This document shows positions 1 through 15,575 of a stretch of 64,000 bases of DNA, in pieces. The stretch spans positions 5,580,001 through 5,644,000 of the forward strand of contig OZ218953.1 in assembly GCA_965112735.1 (NCBI GenBank), read 5' to 3'. Within the stretch, counting starts at the first letter, position 1. Every line of letters begins with the position of its first letter. Made by a program: the position numbers and the translations under genes. Under the pieces are notes generated by a model. That model did no database searches and was not told the DNA's origin. It was given only the letters and a program-made list of their open reading frames with translations. This DNA comes from Phaeosaccion multiseriatum. Lineage: Eukaryota; Protista; Ochrophyta, other classes.

Positions 1-2605
1 GCAGACAGACAGACAGAGAGAGAGGGGTGTCCAGTGCAGCCAAGCAGCGGAGAGGAGGAGGAGGAGTAAGAGGAGTAAGAGGAGGGAGGAAGGAAGGTGA
101 ACGAGACCCCCCCTCAATCCCCTGAAAGGGCATGTTGCCGTATTTGGCCAAGCAAGGCAATCAGAGACAAGTCTTCTTCCCTTCCATGCTTCACTCTTGC
201 CCCCCCCCCTCCTCCCCTCCCCACCTCAGTCCTTTCTTGCCCGTGGGCAGCTTGAGCATGACTGCGAAGAGCTCGTCGATCAGCAGGGAGCGGTGCCGTG
301 TGTAGTGCGCGAACACGGCGTGAAGAACCCCCACTGAGCACAGCTGAAGAGCGTGCAGCTTGGATGCCTCAGCCGCCGAGGACTGCGTTATCAGCGTGGA
401 CTTCAATTGAAGGCAAGGGAGGGGGAGGTGGGCGGGCGGGCAGGCACGCAAAGGAAGCAGTGAGAGGGAGTCAGCGTAAAAGGCCACCCTCCAGAGACCA
501 GGCACATCGGAGGGCAGGTGGAGAGGCCGAGCACGGAAGCGTGGGAAAGCCTTGAGATTGGGGTAGAGCCTAAAGATGGGTGGAAATCTAGAGCCTACTG
601 AATTGGAGGTGGGAGGGGGGGAAATATACCATTATGCCATTGGGAGCATGCGTGTGGAGGAGGCCAAGTGCCCCTTGAGGCACTGCACCGCAAGGCTCAA
701 ACTCACACTGACCTGCATGGTGGAGCACAGAGTGAGTATGTGCCTGTCCTGCAGCTTCTTGCACACCAGGCCCTCCAGCTTGCCCACAAGCTCGTACACC
801 TGGGGCAGCGTCTTCAGCAGCTCCCTATGGCAACAACAGGACAGGGCGTAGGCATAGGGTAGCGCATGCATGGTCAGGGGCACGCCACGGCTCGGTGAGA
901 AGGGTCAGTAGATTGAGCTGGCCATTTCGACAAAGAGGGGCAAGCAAAGAGCTTGGGGGGGGGGCTCCCGAGTCGGGGCGGACGAGACAGACTGGGGAGG
1001 AAGGACAGGAGAAGAAGGGGCAGCAGGACTGGCTCGGCATCGCTTCTTACTTGCAGAGGGGTTTGACCCAGCCCGTCACCTCGTCTGCTTTGGTGGCCTT
1101 CTTCCTCTTCTTGCTGCTGCTGGCCGCCTTCTCCTTCCTCTTGCCACCGCTGGGGGCAGGGCTCGACAAGACTCCTCCCCCCTTCTCCTCCTCCTCTTCC
1201 TCTTCGCCTCTGGCACTAGCCCTGGCTGGAGCAGCTCCTGTACAGAGGTCTGCAATGCACTTCTCGAGTCTGGCGCTGCTCTCGGTGGGGTCGAAGCAGT
1301 AAGTGAAGTGCTGCGAGAGGTGCTGCTTAGTGAGGCCGATGACGTCGTCGATGAGGTCCTCGTCCAGCAGCAGGGGGTCCACAGAGGGGGTGGACAGCAC
1401 CATCAGGGCAGAGGTGGCGGCGAGCAGCGACAGCTTCAGGCAGGCCACCTCTTCCCTGAGAGCGCTCACCCCTGTGGAGGACGTCCCGTTGCTCGCGTGT
1501 TGGGCCTTGTGGGTGGGGTGCCGAGAGGCAGGGCAGGGCAGGTCAGGACGGTTGGGGGGGGGGGAGGCTGAAGAAACCCACCCACATCAGATCATTGCCT
1601 ACAATTACTTTCACCTCTCCTCTCTCTCTGACGGACCTGTTTGGCAGTGAGCTGGAAGAGGTCGATGCTCACCCCCACTCGCACAGCCCCCCCCAGGAGA
1701 CGCATGAAGGGCGCCAAAGTCTCCACTTTTACCTGGTGCAAGCACTTGAGGCGTCGCAGGGTGGACAAGCGTGCAAAGGCGCCCTGCAGCTGCTTGTACG
1801 ACAGCAGATTCTTCCTACTCGCAACCGCGTCGTTGTCTCTACCGCCGTCTGGGACGTGCTCTGTGCCATCGTACTGCCGGGCCTTGGTGCTCTGCCTCAC
1901 TTCACTGTCCTCGCACGACCCCACCAAGCCGTCGATGTAGTCTCCAAACTGCTCGATAACGTCCTTTGCGTTCTGCACGGCCTCGGAGCCTCCTTCTGAA
2001 GCTGCTGCTCCCCTTCCCTTGCCCCCAGCCCCTGAGGGAGCAGCCGCTACGGAAGCCTCCTCGTCCCCCCCAGCAGACGTCGTTCGCCGTCTCTTCTTCC
2101 TCCCCTTCCATACCCTGCCCCCCCACGCATCGCCGTCCTCCTCTTCCTCATCGGCGCCCCCTTCCTCCTCCTCTTCTTCGTCCTCCTCTTCTTCTTCCTC
2201 CTCCTCTTCTTCGTCTTCTTCTTCTTCTTCTTCTTCGTCCTCCTCCTCCTTGCCCCCCTCTTGGTCTTCGTTTTCCGCGCTTCGCAGCCGCCGCTGCTGC
2301 AGAGTATCGCCTCCATCCTGCAGGATGATGTCCTGAAGCTCCTCCAGATCGACTTCTTCCCTGTCTCCGTCCTCGTAGGTGATGCCATACACCGTCACCG
2401 TTGGCGCCTCTTGCTCGCTCCCCGCTGGAGCTTCACACGCAGCCACGGACAGGTCGTAAATGACAGACCCCGTGTAGAACTCCCCATCTGCGAACAGCTT
2501 GGACACCTTCTTCTTCATGTAGGGGCTATCGAGACGAGCCCCCTCTGGCGGTGCAGAGTCCAGGCCGTCCTCCTCCTCGTCCATCATGTCGACACTCTCA
2601 CTCAT
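1..2605 (-). CDS. SCC2: Cohesin loader NIPBL/Scc2 (Nipped-B-like), 5' exons; the gene runs off the left edge. It has an N-terminal Tudor-like domain and an acidic tract.
   Basis: Spliced exons give ALMVLSTPSVDPLLLDEDLIDDVIGLTKQHL..CFDP and LQLCSVGVLHAVFAHYTRHRSLLIDELFAVMLKLPTGKKGLR. These match conserved NIPBL segments of the form ..EDVIERVI..TKFHL..QYDP and LQL..VFSRYEKHRQLILEEIF..LARLPTSKRSLR. Exons lie at about 2605-1646, 1471-1051, 800-682 and 408-225, with GT-AG introns. Confidence 0.85.
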
Positions 2606-3713
2606 GGGGCTACTCCCTTCTTGGCCCCCTTTGCCTCACGCCCACGCACAACGACGCCAAAGATCCCTGCTTCGTTGACAAGAGGTGGAGAGAAGGGGGT
2701 GGGTGCGAGGACATCGAGTACCAAGTGAAAGAGGGGGAAGAGAGAGGTGTGAAGCAGTTGCCCGTTGAAGCCGGGGGGGGCATCGGGTTTGAGGAGTTGC
2801 AGATTAAGAGAGAAGCGCCAGAGGAGAGACCGAGATCCCCACAGCAAATACTTCATCAGTCCTAAGCAAAGGTGAGGGCGTGCAGAGAGAATCACACAAA
2901 AATCTAATCTAATCATTCCTCCCCCCCTCCCGCCAAGGCGGGAAGGCGGATCCACTTCGATTTTGGTATCTTGGCGGCCGCGCCGTCTGTGGAGAAGGAG
3001 GAGAGGGACACACTCAGTCTTTCCTCTCCAACCACACTTGTCCCCTCACCTCGTTGTTCCCGCCTTGCCTGCCCTGTCTATCCTGCACCCCCCCCTGATG
3101 TCCCAACCGTACATCCATCCCGGCTCGGAGTCCGTCCGTTCCTCCCGGGGTGGAATCCAGGCCTCGAGTTTTATCCCCTTGAGCAGACTCACTTTAGCAT
3201 TACGAGTATCGACGGCTCGACGTGTGGCGGAGGAATCTGGTGCAGTGCCTGCTTGATTAGAACGCCGGTAAAGTAGAGGACGTTGCTCGCAATCCCGAGT
3301 TCGCTGCCTTAAAGTGTTGAATGGAAGTGCAGGGGAGGGGCAGTGAGGGGAGGCGCTCGCGACGCACTCGCACCAGGGTGACCCGCCTCGACCGAATCTC
3401 TGCGTGAGAAGGGACGGAAGCGCGTGGATAGACTGCCCGTTTTCTGCGCTGCGATCGCTTTCTCGCAGCTCTTGCGCGGCTTTTCTCGGCCTAGCGGGAG
3501 GCGATCACTGTCCAGAGTGGTCGAATTGAGCAGCAGCAGCCGCAGAAGCGGTAGGCAGCAACAGGAGCACCTCGTCGCGGGAATCGAAGTAGCTGCCACG
3601 GTAGCGGCAGTCGCAGCCGTGGCAATGGCCGGCAGTAGGAGTTGTTGAGTCGGCCCGATCAAGGGAGCGCAGGTGATTGGCGACGACGGTGGGAGGCGTG
3701 GCCGCAAGTCGCC

Positions 3714-4881
3714 ATGGCTCCGGCCTCACCAAAGGGTGCGCATACAGTGTGCCTCGCGAAATGCAAGAATCGCAAGAACATGTTCTGGCCCGCGCGCATT
3801 TGCGACGCCGATGAGGTGGATCAGCATTTGGCGGGGGGTGCGGATGCTGCTGATGACACCGGCACAGCAAGGAAAGCGGGACCGAAGCCGTCGGTGTCTG
3901 CGAGTGACGAGGACATGGACCCCAGAAATAACGTGCTGGTACAAATATTATGGTAAGTAAGCGCCGGGCGTTGGCTTCGGGAGCGGAGCGAAGGAGAGGG
4001 AATTATAGGAATGGGGAGGGAGAGGGACTCCTTTTTTTTCTTTTTTCTTTTTTCTGTGACGATCTGCTTCTCGCGGCGAGTTGCTTCGCGTGTATGTGAG
4101 TGATCCACCAAGGGCAGTACTGCAGCGAGCGGCTTTGGCGGAGAGCAGCCGCTGCGCGTGGAAGAATCCACGGCCTTCGACTATCCTTTGATTGCCGTGC
4201 GTGATTTCTTTTTTTTTCTCATTTTTTTTCGCAAGACCGAGCACGTTGAGCGAACGCTCTCCTTCATTTCGCCACGCCACGTCTATGGGCTGCGCCGCCT
4301 CTCGACCCTTCTCTCCTCGTTTCCCTCCTTCTCTTCTGACCTGCTTGCCTGCTTTTGCTCCCTGCGTCCCACTCACTTGTCGCCTTGATCCTGACCAATC
4401 AGTGAGAGCGGCCACAACTACTTGGACTGGATCCAACCCGACCACATCAAGAGATTCGCCGTGGGCTACGGGGGCGGCAATTTGGCGGATCGGACGGGCT
4501 TGGTCGATTATCAGGTACGGTTAAAGGTCAAGCAAGTGAGTGCTTGTAAGACAACGCGGCGGCAGCGTCTCCCAACAGTCGCACGGCTTGCGCGAAGAGC
4601 ACACACACAATTTTTTCCCTCGCCAGTGTGCCTTTTGTCAGTCTACCTACTCGCATTTGGTGGGATCTCAATCTCAATCCCCTCCAGCAACACTAGGGGG
4701 ACACACAGGATAGGACAGGCTCGAAGCTTTTCCTCCCTTTGCTGTGCATGCTCTCCTCTTTTCCGCTCACCGCTCCCTGTCCGATGAGCGGAGCTCACTC
4801 ATCACTCAGCATAGCCCCGCCGAGTAACCACGTCCCCCACACTCCCCCGGCCTTGCTCTTGTCGCCATGCGTGCTGCCTTT

Positions 4882-4917
<36 letters not shown>

Positions 4918-6254
4918 CTGCCGAGTGCCTGGCTGCCAAGCTTCTCGAGTGCAAGGCCGAGGAGGAGGAGATTGAGGCCAAGGTCAGAGCCCAGCGGGTC
5001 ACCCTCGGCCTGCCCGCCCTCGACACAGACTCCGCCAGCAAGGGCGCCGAGCTGCGCATGCACAGGTACAATAGGGAGGCCTTTAATTTCTACGACGATC
5101 AGCTCGAGTGCCCATGGAGGTGCAAAGAGTGTAACCAGCACACGGCAAGCTGCGGCTGCGAGAAGGGGCTCACGGCGTATATTACTGACGTGCTGACCAA
5201 GGGGCCGGACAAGAAGAAGAAGAAGGGCACGTCGGCGCGCAGCAGGGGCGTGAATCGCTATGTGATGTTCCGCTGCCCTGTGGCCGTGGCGGAAAAGGCC
5301 GGCATCAACAGGTCAAAGAAGTGTATGTACTGCAACCCCCCGGGGCAGCTGATATATATGGTGGAGTGGGGCAAAAAGGACTTTGTGGCGGTGGCGGATC
5401 AGGCCTTTGCCGAGCAAGCGCGCCTCGAGGCTATGTACGAGCCTGTGGACAACAAGCCCACAGCATCCCCCCCCACATCTGCGACTAGGCTTAGGGTTAC
5501 CGCCGACAGTGGTAGCGGCAGCGGTAGCAGCGGTGAAAGCGGCGGAGACTCCTCTATGTTGTCGAGCACCCGGAGAAAGGTGCCTCCCGCCCCGCAGAAC
5601 CCGGCCGCGCCCCCCTCAGGGGCAGGGGCAGGAGCAGGAGCAGCAGGAGGAGCGGTGGGGGGGGTGGGCACGAAGAGCAGCAGCAGTCGCCATAGCGGGC
5701 CCCTTCGGATACGCAGGTGCAATCAGTGCGAGGGCTGCACGGCCCCGAACTGCGGCGAGTGCTGGGCCTGCAAAGACATGGTCTTCTTCGGAGGGAGAGG
5801 CACCCGGCGCCAGCCCTGTGTGCTACGCTGGTGTAGGGAGAAGGCGCGCATGCAAGAGGAGGTGAGAGACAAGGGATTTAGAGAGAAGGGAGAAATCGAG
5901 GGGGGGGAGACAAAGAAGACTGAGAGAGGGAGAAGTTACGAAACGAGCAAGAGAGAGCGAGGCGAGACAGAGGACATTCACGCGCTCACACTCGGAGCGT
6001 CGCATTCCAGTCTCTTCTCTTCCTCCTCTCTAGACCTGTTGGTGCTTCGTTGTGTCGTCTCTCTCCCTGTTTCGCGCCTTCTTGATTCTTACAGCAGCGG
6101 CAGGCTTTCGAGGATCAGCAGCAAGAGCGGCGAGCTCGAATGGCGGCAGGTAAGCCCTCCCAGCCGCCAAGAAGGGCCTCCAATCCTACTCCTAGCAGTA
6201 GCGCGAGCAGCAGGGCAGCGGCAGCAGCAGCGACGACAGCGGCGGCAGAAGCAG

Positions 6255-6290
<36 letters not shown>

Positions 6291-9200
6291 CGGCGAGGGG
6301 CAAGAGAAACGAACAGCCTGTCGCTCCGATTGACCCCGCTGCCTCGTTTTCCTCCTCGCGCTCGCTAAGAGCAAAGCGACCGCGCTCGCTCCGCCTGGAG
6401 CTGGAAAGTGACCCCTCCTCCGGCCCACGCCTACGGGGCAGCAGCTCTGCCGCAGCACCGGTGGCGCGCAAGGTCGCGAAGGGGGCAAAGGTGGTGGCGG
6501 CTGCTGGGGGGAGCACTGGGGGGAGCTCTGGGGTTAGCACTGGGACTGCCAAGGGGGGACAGAGTAGTCCGGCGGGCAAAGGGCGCAAGGGAAGGGCTGC
6601 GGCAGGGACGGGGACAGGGGTAGGGGCAGGGGCAGCAGTTGGTGATACAGGGGCAGGGGCAGAGGCAGGGGCAGGTAGGACGGGTAGAGCGGGCAGGAGG
6701 AAGACCGCCGCACAGCTCGAGGCGGAGAAGCGCCAGGAGAGGCACAACTTGCTTCTAGAGAAGCTGCGCAGCAATGCGCCGCCGCAGACGCTCTTGACGG
6801 AGGAGGAGAGCCAGCAGACGGCGGCGGCTGCCAAGGTAAGACAGCTCAGTTAGGGGGGACTGACCTACTCACTCACTGACTTCCCTAGAGCTCGACCATT
6901 TTACTTCAGTCTGATGAACTAAGGCGAAAGTGTTGCATCATGTGACTGTACAAAACCCCAAAGGTTATGAAGAAGCAGGCCGTGGCCGTTGTGTGCTCTG
7001 CTGCCAAAGACTGCAACCCTTCTCGCGAAAAGTACCGTGACAACGAAGGCAACATGAAGGTGCGCGACTTTCTCACCAACGGCTTCAGGGTGCTCAAGCT
7101 CTGGACAGAACTCAACTCGGTAGAGAGGGGGGGGGAGGGCTTCGGTTTTCCCATGTGCTCTGTGAATAGAGGTTCGAGGAGAGGAGGAGGAGGAGGAGGG
7201 GCAGAGAGGGGAGCGGAAGGGGGAAGGGGAAGCAAAGAAGAAGCAGCACCCAAAAGCTCGTGGCTGCAGTCGGCCGGGCGACAAGGACTCCATCCTTTCG
7301 CCAAGTATGACTACGGAGTGATGCAAGTGGTCGTGCCGAAGCGCATCGTCTCTGCGGTGTGGGCAGTGGACCCCTTCGTGGTGGTGCCTGAAATTGGAGC
7401 ACGGATGGTCTCGGGGCTGAAGAACAATGACCTTGGTCTTGTTCCCGATGCCCCGGGTGCGGCCACTGCTGTCCGGGGGGGGCGCAGGAGCCCGCGAGGG
7501 AGGGGCTCTGCTGCTTCGCCAGACACCGTGACGGACACTGTGACGGCACACTCGTCCTCGTCAGAAGGGAGGGGAGGGAGGGGAGGAGGTGGAGGGGAGT
7601 TGGCCTTACCAGACGCTGCCAAAAGGCTGCCCACGAACTTCAATGGCAAAGCACGCCGCAAGTCATCCTCTTACCGAGGTGTCTCTTTGCAGAAGAAGAA
7701 GTGGGTAGCAAGGATTCGTCGGCCTCGGACTGGGGACGATCGAACCCTTGGACACTACGACACGGAAATGGAGGCGGCGAGGGCGTACGACGCTGTTGCG
7801 AAGATTTACTACAAGGACAAGGCCACCCTCAATTTCACAGACGACGTCGACGCCGGAGAGGCGGCTTTGGCGGCCGCGGCGGCTGCTTCTGCAGCAGCGA
7901 AGGAAGACGAAGAGGAATTGCTGGTAGAAACGGGGGGAGAACGCGCAGGAGTGAAGAGACGGCGAGTGGAGGAGAGCAAGGACGCAGCGATTCTCAACGA
8001 GGGTGCGAGAGTGTCCGGAAGAGGAGAAGCTGTGGTGATTGGCGGTGGGGCTGCCGAGGCGAGCAAGACGGAGGGGGGGGGGCAAGGAGCAGTGGGGGGC
8101 GGAGCAGGACAAGGAGGTGGAGGGGTTCATGTCAGCACGGAAGGTGCTTCGTCCTCGGCCTCCCCGCCTTACAAGGGCGGAGACGGAGAGGTTACACTGC
8201 TGGGGAAGAACCAATCGATGGAGGGGACGGAGGGGAAGAAAACAGGACCAGTAGACTCAGGAAGGGGCGCTGCAGGTAGTGACAAGTCTGTTGCCGGAAA
8301 GTCTCTCCCTAGCACTGAACACGCTGAGAAGGGGGGCTTGGGTGGTGTCCGTCCTGCAGCCGAAAAGGCGCACGGTGCCACACCCTCAGTGGTCGCTGCT
8401 TCCAACGGAGCGAGGCCCGTGGTGGGACCCAATTCTGGCGGGGCCAACGGTCCATGCGAGGAGAAGGCGGCTGCTGGGGCTGCTCATTTGAACGGAAGCG
8501 CCACAGCCCCTACTAGTCCCACGGCCAGCAGCGGGGCAGGTTTGGGAAAGAGCGGAGCCGAGAGCGGTGTTGTTGGCGCAGAGGCGACGGCCATGGATGT
8601 TGCTGCAGATGGGGTAGGGGTAGTAGGCGGCGGTGTGGAGTCTGGCAGGAGCGGTGGTGGTGACAGTCTCGCCGCTGATGCTGGCGGTGATGGGGCGAAA
8701 GGGGGCAGGAAAGGGCTGGTGCCAGGCCAGGCTTTGCTCTCGTTCTTGTGCTGCCAACCGCCAGGACGGGATATCAGCGCCGTTGGCACCGACACAAGTC
8801 TGCGTGGTGGTGCTTCGCAGTGGTCTCTGGAGGCGCAGGTCCGCGTGATGAAGCAGAGGCACCTTGTTGAGAGCATCATGCTGCTCGTGCAGGGGGCGAC
8901 AGGCTCGAGGCAAGTGGCCCGCTCCAAAGCGTCGGTAGCGAAGGCGAGGGCACTGGCAGCGACCAAGCCAAGGAAGGGGGCAGGGGGGGTGGGGAGGGCA
9001 GCCAAGACGCTGGAGCGGGAGCCAGAGTCCAGTAAAGCAGGAATAGCGAGAGGAGGAGGGAAGGCGACAGGAGAAGGAGGGGGGGGGGCGGTAGGGAAGA
9101 CATCGGCCAAGGGAGAGAGGGCATCGAAGTGGGAAAGCTCTAGTTCTGGAGGGGCAGGAGCGGACGGGAGCAATAAGGAGCAAACCTCCTCCGGGCCACT

Positions 9201-9601
9201 GTCGAAGGGGAAAGTGGCGAAGGGAGGAGCGGGAGGAGGTGCGCCTATGGGAATGACAGCAGAGGTGGACAAGAGAAGCACGGGAAAGGAAGACGAGACA
9301 GGGGCGGGGAAGGGGAAGAAGGCGGGGGGGAAGGCACCTTCTTCCTCCTCTGTGAGCTCCTCTTTGGTATCCTCTGTAGCCACGGGAGGGGCTTCTGCTG
9401 CACGGGTCCCGCCCCCTCCTCCTGTCGCATCGTCTTCTGCCCCTCCTCGTCCTCCTTCCGCGAAGTCGGCAGGGGGGGTGGCTGCAGCAGCAGTGGCACC
9501 AGCAGCACCAGCACCAGCAACAGTAGCAGCAGCTGCAGCAACAGCAGCAGCGAAAACGACAGCAGCACCAACACCAGCAACCACAACACCACCACCACCA
9601 C

Positions 9602-9636
<35 letters not shown>

Positions 9637-11572
9637 AGTGGCAGCAATGGCTGCAATGACAGCAAGGAAAGGAGGGGAAAAGCTGCACCTTCATCTGGCC
9701 TGCGCTCGTCATCAGCAGCGGCCAAGACCAAGGCTAAGGCCAAGGTCAACCCCAAGGCCAAAGCCAATGCCAAGCCACAGGCCAAGAAGCTCAGCGGGCG
9801 TTCACTTGCCGCTGCCGTGGACGAGGCCCTGGAGATCCTGGAGGTGACTCACAGGAGCCTGCAGGAGCTGCTCGATGAGGACGGGGCGGCGGTAAAGGTG
9901 GCGTTGGACGGGGCCTTAGAGGAGTATGTGGCACGAGTCAAGACGCAAGTACAAGTGCTGCGCATGTGTTTGGAGGACGCGCAGACCAACTGTGTGCAGC
10001 TCAGGCAGAGAAGGACGGCCAAGGAGGCCCATCTCAACACCCTCGCTCGCACTCTGCAGATGGGGGGGGGCTTGGCACCAGCAGCGAAAGAGGGCGCTAG
10101 TGCAAGTAGTGGGGTTAACAGAGTCGGCACTGGTGGTGGCAGCAGTGCTACTGCTGAGGGTGGTGGGGGTGGTAGAAGTAGTAGTAGTAGTAGTAGAGGT
10201 GGTGATGGTAGTGGTGACAATAGCAGTAGTGGAAAGAAGAGGGGCAACAGCAGCGGTGGTGGCGGCACAGGTGGTGCCCAGGTGCAGTCCCTCCTCAGCT
10301 CAAACTCTGCACAGCTCGCAACTCAGATCCTCGCGGCGGAGTGGGCAGATGTGGCCAAGCTCAAGGAGGAGGAGGCGGAGATGCAAGAGGGGCTTAAGGT
10401 TATGGAAAGGGACCTCGAGGCCGCGCAGGGCAGACTCGACAAGAAGCTGCTCGAGGCAAGGGACGGGGAGGCGGCACGCTGGCTCAAGGAGAGGGAGGGG
10501 CAGCTGCGCTTGGTGGCGAGGGAGTGGGACGGCCTCCGTGCTGTGCTCAAGAGACAGGTGAGGGGCCGTGGCCTGTCGGTGGGAGAGGGAGGGAGGGACG
10601 AGAGGAGAGGGGGATTGACGGAAAGGAGGGGGGGAATCCCCTTGGTGTGTCGTTCACGCCACCGTAGAGCCCAGCATTCCTTTCAGCGTCAGCCTTAGCC
10701 TCAGCCAGGAGCATGCGCGAGCAAACACACGTCTGATTGTCTTGCTTCTTGCTGCTGCTGCTGACGTTGTTGTTTCCTGTGAGCAGCTCGAGTCCAGTCG
10801 CACGCTTCTTCTCAGTGACTCCGCGTGCCGCGAACATTTGGTGCCGCCGGAGAAACTGGAGCGGCCCAAACGGATGGACGAGGTGAGAATTGCATACGCT
10901 TCTTCCCTCGCGGCTCACGGAAGCGAGGCGGTGGTGCTTTGGTGTCCCACGAGCGGCTTTGCTTTGCTTTGCCTTCCTGTGGGCAAAATAACGACGGACG
11001 ATGCGCCCACCCCACCCCCCCCTCCTTTGCCCCTCCCTTCGTACTCCATGTGCCTGCCGAAACTTCTTCTCTGTCAACTCCTCCTCCTCCTCCTCGTCGT
11101 CGTCGTCGTCGTCGTGGTCGTCGTCATGGTCGTTGTTGTTGGGTCGCGTAACCTTAACCCCGCTTCTTTCTTGCTTCCATCTCACTCCCATGATTCTTCT
11201 GTGTTTCCTTCCTGCCTCCGCCCCCCTCCGCTCTACGACTTCGCCACACCCCACTACACCTTCACACACCACACCACACCACGCTACCCCCCAGGCTGTC
11301 CGCGCAATTTCCTTCACCTCCCAGGCCCTTCCTCTTGAGACGCACGTGAAGGACTTTGTGGACTCGGAGTGGCTCGACATGATCTTCCCCAACGCTCTGC
11401 TCAAGCTTGCTCACAGCGTCACTTACGTGGCCCGGCTACAGGACCGGATCGCCAAGGCAGGCACCTCGTGGGAGTGCCTCACAGCGGACGACATGAGCGA
11501 CGACGAGGACCCGGACAGCATGTCGGGCAAGATGAACAGGGACACAGTGGGCAACCAGAGGTGCGTGCCGGC

Positions 11573-11612
<40 letters not shown>

Positions 11613-12668
11613 TGACTTGTTGATGTCGCCCCGTACCAGGCTGGGGCGGGAGCTGTGGCTGGGGCTGCTCTGCAGGACGTCCGAAAAGAGTGCCTCAACT
11701 CTGTTTCCCTCCCTCTCCCTCTCCCTCTCCCTCTCCCTCTCTCTTTCTCCGCCTATCCCTTCCCATGATCTGTCCCTTCCTTCCCACGGGACGTGACCAG
11801 GTCGTGGGCTGCCGCGCAAGCAGCAGCAGGGTCGGTGATTGAAGCCATCGACCGCGTGCTCTTCGGTCGGGCGCACAATGCCTTCTGCGCGGTGCGGCCG
11901 CCGGGCCATCACGCGGGCATTCACCTCCACTGCATGGGAGCGGTGTCGAACGGCTTCTGCTTGATCAACAACGTCGCTCTAGGGGCCATGTACGCACACC
12001 ACCACCGGGGCCTGGGGAGGATCGCCGTTGTGGACTTTGACGTGCATCACGGGAACGGCACGCAGGATGTGCTCTGCCGCACCTACCACCCTTCCTTTCT
12101 GTATGCCTCCATCCATGCGCACGGCTGGGCAGAACAGAGTGCAGGGGGGATGAAGATCTTCCCGGGCACGGGCGGCACTGAGGTGCCTACTCACGACCAC
12201 GTGCTCAACCTCCCTATCAGCGGCAGGGTCACGCCCTCTGCCTTCCACCGCGCCACCACGACGATCTGCGAGGCCCTGGACCGCTTCCGCCCAGACTTGA
12301 TCTTGCTCAGCTCGGGCTTCGACGCGCACCAGGCAGACCCCTCGAAGCTGGGCATGCTCGAGGCGAGCGACTTTGGTATCTTCACTAGGAGGATGGTCAA
12401 TGCAGCGGAGCGGCTCTGCTGTGGCCGCCTCGTGAGTGTACTCGAGGGGGGCTACGCGCTGGACTGCACAGAGAGCGTGCAGGCGGAGGGCTTGAATGGG
12501 AGTCTGGCCCCCGGGGGTGGGAACCCTTTCGCGGTGAAGAGGGTCAAGCACGCCGGCACGGACAACCCGTTGGAGGAGACGCTCTCAGACTGCATTGAGG
12601 CGCATGTACAGGCACTCGTGGACGGCGTCACCATGCGCGTGAGGAAGGAGGAGGGAGAGGGGCAGTAG
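3714..12668 (+). CDS. Multidomain chromatin protein: PWWP + Cys-rich motif + CXXC zinc finger + AP2/ERF + coiled coil + class II-type histone deacetylase
   Basis: Phase-consistent exons at about 3714-3952, 4403-4514, 4917-5861, 6093-6835, 6964-10557, 10787-10882, 11296-11560 and 11801-12668. PWWP: CLAKCK..FWPARIC..VLVQILC..YLDWIQPDHIKRF. CXXC: CNQCEGC..CGECWAC..FGG..RQPC..RWC. AP2: SSYRGVS..KWVARIR..LGHYDTEMEAARAYD..ATLNF. HDAC: ERPKR, RPPGHHAG, GFC, DFDVHHGNGTQ, GFDAH, LEGGY. Confidence 0.85.
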
Positions 12669-13073: not shown

Positions 13074-15575
13074 TCAGTCGAAGTGTATCCCAATCGCGTC
13101 GCACTGGTCCCACGAGTAGCTGTCGTACATGTAGGGCAGGCTGTCGCTGCCCGGCAGGATGAGGTCGAGGATCTCGCCATTTGTGAGGCGCACCGTCTCC
13201 CCGTCAATCTCGAAGGAGAAAGGCCTAATGTCGTCGTAGCCGTGCCCAAAGCACGTCCCGCTGACGCAAGTGGGCAGTTCCACCTCAGTCTCCACCTCGC
13301 TCCAATCGCAAACGAGTCCGCTGTCTCCCACGTCGCTCGTGTGCATGTATCCCCACGCCGGGTCCCACGAGGCGTCTGCCGTGAGAAATTTCTGCCCCAG
13401 GAAGCGCTCCATGGCGGGGTGCAGGATCCAAAAGGTGGGGTCTTGCGGGGCGGCGGACGTGTACATCTCCCCCACCGTGCCCGTCTCGCACAACACACCG
13501 AGGATGCTTGTCCACATGTGTGCGGTGGCGGCCTCGTCCTCCTCCAAGCCCGCGTACATGAAGCGGCCCAGCGCCTCGTCGTAGTAAATGTATGACGACG
13601 AGACGGCCATCCACTCCAGGGCCTTGCTCTGCTGTAGGGCGTCGTAAGAAGAGAGTCCGTTGGCCTCGAGCACCTCCGCCGGACAGGAGGTGCGGCATTC
13701 CGAGTACGGCACGCCCTCCGAGCAGTCCTCGGCGGTGCGGAGGAAGCCCATCCTCCAGAGGGTCTTGAAGAGGAGGGGGTGTTTGCCGGGCATCCTAAGC
13801 TTCATCATGAGGTCATTCACTTCGTCACCAAGCCCCCACTCGCCGCCGATGAGGATGTGCACGGGCCCGTGGGTGCCGCCGTTGAGGCAGTTCTGCATAG
13901 CGGCGAAGCTGATCAACCATGTCCCGTGTTGTGTGTGAGAGCGTTTGGGAATCAACACCAAGATCCAAGAGCAGGGGTTCATGTGAGGATGGGGGGGAAG
14001 CGGCGGAGGGGAGATTGAGATCATTGTAGAGGGGGATGGACGGGGTTGAAGAAAGTACTCTCTGCTCACAAGGGTGTTCTGAATAGCATGTCCGTTCTGA
14101 GCTCTGCCCACACTTTCCATCCACAAACTTGAGTGGCAGATATATCGCACGCACGCATGCACACATACACGTGCACATGCACACACGCACACCCGCACAC
14201 GATCATACACGAATACACTCACAACGCGCACACGCCCCCCCCCTCACCTTGGTCTGATGAAGCAGTCCTTGAACGTAGAGCAGGTGGGCGGAGAGAAAGT
14301 GGTCACACCATTGGTCTTGACACTCCGCTGCAGGAATGGCACCGGGCTCGTGTTCCACGGCGACCGCAGCAAGCCGTACGGATTGTGCACCGCCTCCCAC
14401 GCGTCTGCCGCCACCGGGGTGTATGCCCACCTCCCCTGACGAACAACATGGTTTGGCAAGTTGTCGCCCTCCCCTCCCTCAGTGACAGGGTTGTTGTTCC
14501 CGAACCAATTGGCATGGAAGATCGGGCTCTTATCTAGGGTGCCGTCTGTAGAAAGCTCCCCATCAATGGTGTGGTCCCAGTAGGGGATGGCTACCGAAGG
14601 GTCAATGACTTGCAAAGCCTGCTCCACCGATAGCGTCACCCCCACGTGGTTGGTGACGATGCCGGCGTCATCGTGCCAACCGTCGCACGTCTTCACACCA
14701 GCCCCGTCAAGGTGCATGCTAATAAAGAAGGACATTGGCTTGTAGGAAGGTCCGAAGAGCTGCTTCCCTGTGCTGTCGTCGACTCGATACATGGTCTCCA
14801 ATGCATCGAGGAAACGGTTCCTGTCGTCGTCCGTTAGTGCCCGGATTTCTCTGCGTACATACTTCACCATGACCTCCCCCGTCAAAGTCGTGGAGTGACT
14901 CCACGCATCTCCATCAACGAGCTGTCCCTGCTGGACCTGAACCGTCTGATATCCCACCGATGTGAAGGTGTAGTCCACTGCAGAGCTGCCGCTGCTGCTC
15001 CACTCGGAACCAATGGACCACCTATAGGCCGCCCCATCCGCAGCGGTCGGGCAGGCCTCTGTCGACGGCTCCCCTCCCTCCTCCCCGCTGCTGCACTGCA
15101 CCTCCAGAGTGCTCGTCCGGAAAGGCTCGGCCAAGTGTGCCCACTTGTCTATCCAGGTGATGGGCTGTTCTCGAGTATAGCTATTCGTCACCGTGAAGCT
15201 TACGGCCCGTCCCGCTAACTCTGCAGTCGCCGTTGAGCTCGAAAGCTTGTCTGCAGTGGCGGCCTGCATACCGCTACCACCAACAATGTCAAGTCCATCA
15301 CCATTCGAGGACACAAGGGGGCCTCGTAATGCCACACCAAGGACCCCTACAAAAGTCAAGGTCAAGACTCCCACAAGCGCAAGCCGTAACTTGCCTCGAG
15401 ACCGCGGCGATGGCTCCTGCTGCTGCTGCTGCTGCTGCTGCGGGTGCAGCAAGGACGAGCGCAGAGACGATGCTGAAGGCAGGTCTTGAGAGAGCGAGTG
15501 AGGCAAGCCCTTCTCTGGCACCGCACTTCCATGGCCGTCTGAGAAGCTGTTGTAGTGATACCGCTGCAGAGGCAT
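13074..15575 (-). CDS. Tyrosinase-like (type-3 dicopper) protein with an N-terminal membrane anchor; 2 exons
   Basis: VRREIRALTDDDRNRFLDAL; CuA histidines (SMH, GWH, TNH) followed by SVAIPYWD; CuB GTHGPVH..GG and APQDPTFWILHPAMER. TM helix LALVGVLTLTFVGVLGVAL. One intron at about 14248-13910. Confidence 0.85.

Follow-up and report, generated by a model that had tools for sequence, protein, structure and literature searches.

A 64,000-nucleotide stretch of the genome of the ochrophyte Phaeosaccion multiseriatum (GenBank assembly GCA_965112735.1, contig OZ218953.1, forward-strand positions 5,580,001 to 5,644,000; hereafter the window, whose own positions are used throughout) contains, at 3714-12668 on the plus strand, a locus that we confirm to be a real, conserved, and uncharacterized member of the reader-histone deacetylase (HDAC) fusions of stramenopiles. 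The Phaeosaccion protein shares with brown algae a single order of modules: a PWWP-like module, an eight-cysteine (8-Cys) module, a CXXC finger, a small conserved module, an AP2 domain, a coiled coil followed by a short motif that we call EW, and an HDAC domain. Its function is what we infer from these modules. The window is eukaryotic, with a G+C content of ~60% and GT-AG introns, and the locus is modeled as eight exons.

Exon 1, 3714-3952, plus strand: start codon (context gccATGg) and N-terminal half of the PWWP-like module
Exon 2, 4403-4514, plus strand: C-terminal half of the PWWP-like module, whose strand-3 motif straddles the exon 1/2 junction
Exon 3, 4917-5861, plus strand: 8-Cys module (~5055-5369), low-complexity linker, and type-1 zf-CXXC finger (~5706-5846)
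Exon 4, 6095-6835, plus strand: Ala/Gly/Ser/Arg-rich linker with a charged helical stretch at its end
Exon 5, 6964-10557, plus strand: small conserved module (~7060-7377), AP2/ERF domain (~7663-7842), then a low-complexity linker
Exon 5, 3' part, plus strand: coiled-coil stretches, then the EW motif (10519-10548)
Exon 6, 10787-10882, plus strand: start of the HDAC domain, aligning with orthologues
Exon 7, 11295-11560, plus strand: N-terminal portion of the HDAC domain, with a corrected acceptor
Exon 8, 11801-12668, plus strand: HDAC catalytic core, C-terminal tail, and stop codon
Motifs within exon 8: HH dyad (11907-11912), DxH (12039-12047), FDA (12318-12326), and LEGGY (12441-12455)

Gene model and modules of the Phaeosaccion protein

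When joined, the eight exons give 6,861 nucleotides and 2,286 codons with no internal stop, in good agreement with the original prediction from the bare sequence, which had proposed eight phase-compatible exons and a product of roughly 2,300 residues. All donors are GT and all acceptors are AG, and the two junctions singled out in that prediction (6835/6964 and 10557/10787) fall exactly where it had placed them. Its exon 7, in contrast, had been started at 11325 and was corrected to 11295 from the alignment of relatives: the acceptor at 11295 adds 10 residues and closes a gap relative to the Ectocarpus, Scytosiphon, and diatom HDACs, and it is preferred because these residues, present in every relative, are thereby restored in frame.

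Upstream of the start codon at 3714, the frame contains no ATG back to a stop at 3636. The phase-2 acceptor of exon 2 brings the frame back, and the G+C contents of its first, second, and third codon positions are 0.57, 0.38, and 0.84. The frame of exon 4 has 0 stops, whereas the alternative frames have 4 and 10, and over its last 135 nucleotides (0.67, 0.42, and 0.89 at the three codon positions) the coding signal is strong as far as the GTAAGA donor. Exon 5 is ~3.6 kb long (1,198 codons) and is excluded as a chance open reading frame (ORF) because it contains 0 stops, whereas the remaining plus-strand frames contain 29 and 38. An exact-sequence look-up of the 1,243-residue ORF of the exon 5 region (6964-10698) returned no database record.

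Exon 8 matched the HDAC family (Pfam PF00850) with 194.8 bits (E = 2.8e-57) over profile positions 76-289, and alignment to orthologues assigned the N-terminal part of the domain to exons 6 and 7. Established HDAC structures define the roles of an HH dyad, of Asp, His, and Asp zinc ligands, and of a catalytic Tyr in a GGY motif, which is a His in class IIa HDACs. All of these residues are kept in the Phaeosaccion protein and align with HDAC6, namely H2034 and H2035 in GHHAG (residues 2033-2037), D2078 and H2080 in DVH (2078-2080), D2172 in FDA (2171-2173), and Y2216 in LEGGY (2212-2216). A Protein Data Bank (PDB) search matched the domain to HDAC6, HDAH, and HDAC4, with HDAC6 the best overall. 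Its identity to the Ectocarpus HDAC (P0152) is 62%; the nearest HDAC match, P0005, comes from an intron-poor genome and has unrelated neighbor genes. These data support the assignment of a class II-type HDAC that has all of its catalytic residues and looks active, as the original prediction had concluded from the HH dyad, the zinc ligands, and the LEGGY Tyr.

The CXXC finger in exon 3 scored 43 bits against zf-CXXC (PF02008; E = 4.6e-11), above the cut-off of 26.5. In the PDB it aligned without gaps to the CXXC domains of DNMT1, KDM2B, MLL1, and CFP1, and the further matches were to KDM2A, FBXL19, and KMT2B; all of these are type-1 domains. Type-1 fingers are defined by the clusters CxxCxxCx4/5CGxCxxC and CxxRxC, a KFGG motif, and a KQ or RQ dipeptide in the loop (PMC3685328). 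Both clusters (CxxCxxCx4CGxCxxC at residues 385-402 and CxxRxC at 418-423) are exactly spaced in the Phaeosaccion protein and supply eight Cys, and an RRQ tripeptide occupies the position of SKQ in DNMT1 and IRQ in CFP1, in the loop that contacts CpG. FFGG stands where the type-1 motif is KFGG, a Lys-to-Phe change; KFGG is without sequence-specific DNA contact and may confer rigidity (PMC3685328). The eight Cys, the RQ, and the FFGG had all been noticed before, and with the Pfam score and the DNMT1 alignment the type-1 identity of the finger appears solid. It would be expected to bind nonmethylated CpG.

The AP2/ERF domain, judged by its sequence, is complete. It has the YRG and WxAxI strands followed by the AAxAYD helix, and its alignment to solved structures (WRI1, E = 3.8e-9, as well as ERF096, AtERF1, and TEM1) covers slice residues 11-77, the whole domain. 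It is 42% identical to the Ectocarpus domain and 40% identical to that of Scytosiphon. It would be expected to bind DNA sequence specifically. The Pfam match appeared only when a 128-residue slice was used, the scan of the whole 1,243-residue ORF having missed it. Short domains in low-complexity, Ala/Gly-rich proteins of the same genome and its relatives are likely to be underannotated.

Between the PWWP-like module and the CXXC finger lies the conserved 8-Cys module (residues 164-268, window 5055-5369), with the pattern C-x3-C-x2-C-x6-C-x-C, a single Cys, and C-x2-C followed by NPPG. It is 40-47% identical to Scytosiphon (40%, E = 2.9e-19, against residues 267-346 of the Scytosiphon protein P0267), and its eight Cys probably bind two zinc ions. 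No Pfam family matched it in the exon 3 scan, and a homologue search with exon 3 returned no match among candidates restricted to a set length range around the query. The ESM Atlas gave weak leads only (0.67-0.68) to zf-CW, CXXC, PHD, and ADD clusters, and an AlphaFold model from two sequences was too poor to use (predicted local distance difference test [pLDDT] score, 35.7). It could represent a zinc-binding chromatin module that has yet to be described.

The N terminus of exon 5 likewise gave weak leads only in the ESM Atlas (0.67-0.68), and the length-restricted homologue search with its first 330 residues returned only a multi-AP2 protein. In exon 4, a short colinear motif matches residues 540-554 of P0267. 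The EW motif, at the extreme end of exon 5 and directly before the HDAC domain, aligns with brown algae, Phaeothamnion, and diatoms. Both the 8-Cys module and the EW motif are additional to the features described in the original prediction. A blastp comparison with segments from Ectocarpus, unmasked for low complexity, was set aside because Ala/Gly-rich matches dominated its output.

The N-terminal module is the weakest of the set, and its identity as a PWWP domain is only probable. Exon 1 carries an FWPAR motif (3783-3797), and among its 100 nearest clusters in the ESM Atlas, 44 were PWWP (score, 0.85; 176 shared features). Brown algae and diatoms keep both this FWPAR motif and the strand-3 motif. 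Exon 1 is 48% identical to residues 50-78 of P0267, the exon 1 module aligns with the diatom module with an hhalign E value of 1.1e-5, and exon 2 has a homologue in Scytosiphon DNA (L005, 12310-12357). The 1,752-residue Scytosiphon model omits the exon for this second PWWP half, which is present in the DNA. Exon 2 alone gave no PWWP match in Pfam, the module being split by an intron and the exons having been scanned separately; neither a PDB sequence search with exon 1 nor a PDB profile search with the homologous diatom module matched a PWWP domain.

Several results weigh against reading all of these modules as functional chromatin readers. The PWWP profile (PF00855) reached only 17.8 bits in exon 1, versus a cut-off of 25.6, and covered only profile positions 3-29. 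The AlphaFold model of the diatom PWWP-like module, built from five sequences, was too poor to use (pLDDT, 52.4), and a Foldseek search with this low-pLDDT model gave E values of at least 4, which are not significant, although the top-ranked matches were PWWP domains. The AP2 match (PF00847; 27.3 bits, E = 4.6e-6) lies below its curated cut-off of 33.3. Finally, the CXXC fingers of the brown algal orthologues have EYGG and NQ (RNQ) instead of FFGG and RQ. Because the brown algal loop reads NQ, as opposed to RQ in Phaeosaccion, CpG reading may not be conserved.

Orthologues and the single-gene reading

It is very likely that the locus is a single gene, a reading that comes from comparison with relatives and not from transcripts of the same organism. 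Exon 6 has an in-frame stop at 10616, and its only ATG, at 10874, lies beyond the conserved start of the HDAC domain; because no usable start codon precedes that start, the exon needs an upstream exon. A single alignable block runs from the EW motif, at the end of exon 5, into the HDAC start in exon 6 and is shared with Phaeothamnion P0004, the Ectocarpus HDAC, P0267, and the diatom proteins. P0267 itself (Scytosiphon promiscuus CAM9333614.1, 1,752 residues), which was taken from the 90% cluster of the Ectocarpus HDAC, is the product of a single annotated gene of 23 kb. It aligns with the Phaeosaccion protein in five colinear blocks, namely the N-terminal half of the PWWP-like module (48% identity), the 8-Cys module (40%), the CXXC finger (56%), the AP2 domain (40%), and the coiled coil with the HDAC domain (53%; E = 4.6e-140).

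In Ectocarpus sp. CCAP 1310/34 (CACKRE030005118.1), the CXXC, AP2, and HDAC domains also lie in order on one strand. The public annotation places them in two products, a 1,865-residue protein with CXXC and AP2 and a separate 489-residue HDAC. When P0267 was used as the query, two conserved coding exons (8049-8129 and 8819-8935) were found in the gap between the two models (L004, 5371-10000). Because these conserved exons lie within the annotated gap, the split is probably an annotation artifact, and the Ectocarpus locus would also be one gene. The earlier claim that four modules belong to one polypeptide is supported by the Scytosiphon and Ectocarpus colinearity, the lack of a start in exon 6, and the homology across the exon 5/6 junction; its PWWP component remains below the profile threshold.

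Several observations count against a single gene. The sequencing runs found for the locus were listed as DNA or as of unknown kind, and the four examined are DNA, not RNA, since their contigs are colinear through all introns, with even depth and no splice joints. The exon 4/5 acceptor reads aag, whereas the other six read cag; an ATG follows it directly, at 6967; and read-through past the exon 4 donor meets a stop after 16 nucleotides. The aag acceptor and the ATG behind it leave room for a short isoform or for two genes.

That one gene makes several products is rather unlikely, although this is the better of the two alternatives. The positions 6967 and, toward the 3' end of exon 5, 10381 and 10402 provide in-frame ATGs; KDM2A/B offer a precedent (PMC3685328), and the diatom relatives function with fewer modules. 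Nothing in the present analysis supports this explanation directly.

Two head-to-tail genes, one encoding PWWP, 8-Cys, and CXXC and ending at the TAG at 6851-6853 and the other encoding AP2 and HDAC and starting at the ATG at 6967, appear improbable. The observations above would fit such a layout, the aag acceptor being unusual among those of the locus, and the public Ectocarpus annotation splits its locus as well, but elsewhere. The 114-nucleotide spacer would, however, have to accommodate a poly(A) site, a promoter, and a 5' untranslated region, whereas spacers nearby measure 0.4 to 1.1 kb. The 6835/6964 junction is in phase and is flanked on both sides by colinear conserved motifs, and the coding signal of exon 4 continues to its donor. 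Moreover, the CXXC and AP2 domains, which two genes would separate, share one gene both in the Scytosiphon model and in the 1,865-residue Ectocarpus model.

Taking the locus as a single gene, its brown algal orthologues (CAM9333614.1, and CAB1119811.1 together with the upstream 1,865-residue model) have an identical module order and are 40-56% identical to the Phaeosaccion protein in the reader modules and 53-62% identical in the HDAC domain. They differ in being shorter and in having far more numerous and longer introns, and they are unnamed and uncharacterized. In a FastTree phylogeny of 80 HDAC domains, the window HDAC paired with a Phaeothamnion fragment, and this pair joined Ectocarpus and Scytosiphon with a support of 0.98. 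Next came another sequence from Phaeothamnion, and all of these fell within an ochrophyte clade (0.987), specific to stramenopiles, that also includes Aureococcus and diatoms. The neighbors of this clade are other long eukaryotic proteins and a bacterial HDAC family of ~310 residues.

Diatom proteins from Attheya, Entomoneis, and Rhizosolenia (P0007, P0013, and P0026; MMETSP) fall within the ochrophyte HDAC clade, too, and carry both an EW motif and, at the N terminus, a homologous FWPAR module, whereas CXXC and AP2 were not found in them by motif search or phmmer. Since these sequences derive from MMETSP transcripts, reader and HDAC are cotranscribed in the diatoms. Oomycete HDACs, like the Phaeosaccion protein, combine a C-terminal class II-type HDAC with AP2 and a chromatin reader, as in RHY35018.1 of Aphanomyces invadans (P0151; PHD, AP2, and HDAC). 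Their reader, in contrast, is a PHD finger and not PWWP, they are without CXXC and 8-Cys, and their HDAC domains fall outside the ochrophyte clade. Such oomycete class II HDACs with PHD and AP2 (and Med27) have been described (PMC5112689). Taken together, these comparisons point to a stramenopile deacetylase family with interchangeable N-terminal readers, of which the brown algal and Phaeosaccion form is the richest seen.

Full-text literature searches found no paper on a PWWP-CXXC-AP2-HDAC protein or on any CXXC-HDAC fusion. The suggestion that the architecture is undescribed therefore holds for the literature searched, but needs qualifying: the proteins are present, unnamed, in public brown algal annotations, and the PHD-AP2-HDAC combination has been published (PMC5112689).

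Proposed function

The function we favor, with moderate confidence, is that the locus is one gene for a 2,286-residue nuclear chromatin enzyme that is recruited multivalently and deacetylates local histones. A single transcript, the ligands of the modules, the histone substrate, and a repressive outcome are what we infer in proposing it. Long disordered Ala/Gly/Ser-rich linkers and coiled coils would tether the HDAC to the reader modules. The AP2 domain would provide a sequence preference and the CXXC finger added affinity for nonmethylated CpG; the PWWP-like barrel would engage nucleosomal DNA and possibly methylated H3K36, with the PWWP-like and 8-Cys modules together making nucleosome or histone-mark contacts. 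These weak contacts could sum on nucleosome-bearing, CpG-containing DNA that carries an AP2 motif, where the HDAC would deacetylate neighboring histone tails and local transcription would be repressed. The coiled-coil part might allow dimerization. One chain would thus do work that is split elsewhere between a DNA-binding factor and a corepressor-HDAC complex.

In Rpd3S, the Eaf3 chromodomain reads H3K36 methylation and directs Rpd3, and NuRD is likewise a reader-directed deacetylase complex. The concept shared with the Phaeosaccion protein is that of a methyl-lysine or DNA reader steering a deacetylase to chromatin. Rpd3S and NuRD are, however, multisubunit complexes with class I HDACs, whereas the Phaeosaccion protein would carry its class II-type, bacterial-like HDAC on a single chain, and no subunit homology is implied. 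Animal CXXC fingers bring methyltransferases, demethylases, DNMT1, and TET enzymes to CpG islands. The fingers of KDM2A/B, CFP1-SET1, MLL1/2, DNMT1, and TET1/3 have the same type-1 Cys clusters and RQ/KQ loop as the Phaeosaccion finger and bring a chromatin-modifying activity to CpG-rich DNA; in Phaeosaccion, the partner is instead an HDAC, and AP2 is added. Among the twelve mouse ZF-CxxC proteins given in Table 1 of one review, none is a deacetylase (PMC3685328).

It is reasonable to suppose, as the original prediction did, that a single polypeptide integrates H3K36 methylation, CpG methylation state, and DNA sequence, although the weak PWWP assignment and the NQ of the brown algal CXXC loop weaken this claim. 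A stricter version, in which CXXC reads unmethylated CpG, PWWP and 8-Cys read a histone or nucleosome feature, AP2 reads its motif, and deacetylation occurs only where all coincide, is offered tentatively. Equally tentative is the view that such integration has been conserved from an ancestor shared by brown algae and Phaeosaccion, or from earlier still. If true, this would be CpG-directed deacetylation without a counterpart among known animal or plant CXXC proteins, and it would operate in lineages with little or no cytosine methylation.

A deacetylase with a nonhistone substrate would be the alternative: a chromatin-tethered amidohydrolase acting on another acetylated protein or a small acetylated amine, or else a protein that serves mainly as a scaffold. 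The per-domain PDB scores speak for it and against histone deacetylation, since bacterial HDAC-like amidohydrolases (126-120 bits) rank above the single domains of HDAC6 (97 and 88 bits), so that the nearest solved relatives per domain are bacterial amidohydrolases with nonhistone substrates; the bacterial ~310-residue proteins next to the HDAC clade in the tree point the same way. We nevertheless give this alternative little credence. Across brown algae, the HDAC is kept fused to three or four modules that recognize chromatin or DNA, with other readers in diatoms and oomycetes, and chromatin substrates are favored because reader fusion recurs in all three groups. A pure scaffold is unlikely, given that all catalytic residues are kept.

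Neighboring genes and implications for the family

Returning to the favored reading of a chromatin-directed histone deacetylase, the surroundings of the gene hold two further coding regions.

Upstream neighbor, 1592-2605, minus strand: divergent gene starting at 2605, with a spacer of 1.1 kb
Downstream ORF, 13074-14231, minus strand: convergent, 385 residues, with a spacer of 0.4 kb

The upstream neighbor encodes an acidic protein in which Pfam recognizes a PTM/DIR17-like Tudor domain (E = 9.8e-8), and a second chromatin-reader gene may therefore share a promoter region with the HDAC-fusion gene. The downstream ORF has a weak match to a tyrosinase central domain (E = 0.004, below cut-off). The ratio of observed to expected CpG is 0.64 in the window, 0.74 in the HDAC-fusion gene, and 0.87 in the promoter region (2605-3714). 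Cytosine methylation in Phaeosaccion could account for this moderate depletion of CpG and would bear on the target of the CXXC finger.

The comparison also calls two public annotations into question, that of Ectocarpus because it probably splits one locus and that of Scytosiphon because it leaves out an exon. The known forms make up a natural series, with the PWWP-like module alone in diatoms, PHD and AP2 in oomycetes, and PWWP, 8-Cys, CXXC, and AP2 in the protein described here, and this series could be used to trace the addition of targeting modules to a single catalytic core. Because brown algae, among them the genetic model Ectocarpus, also have the gene, the proposal is testable by knockout and chromatin profiling. 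With a CXXC finger, a sequence-specific AP2 domain, and a PWWP-like reader all on one deacetylase chain, chromatin repression would be wired differently and very compactly.

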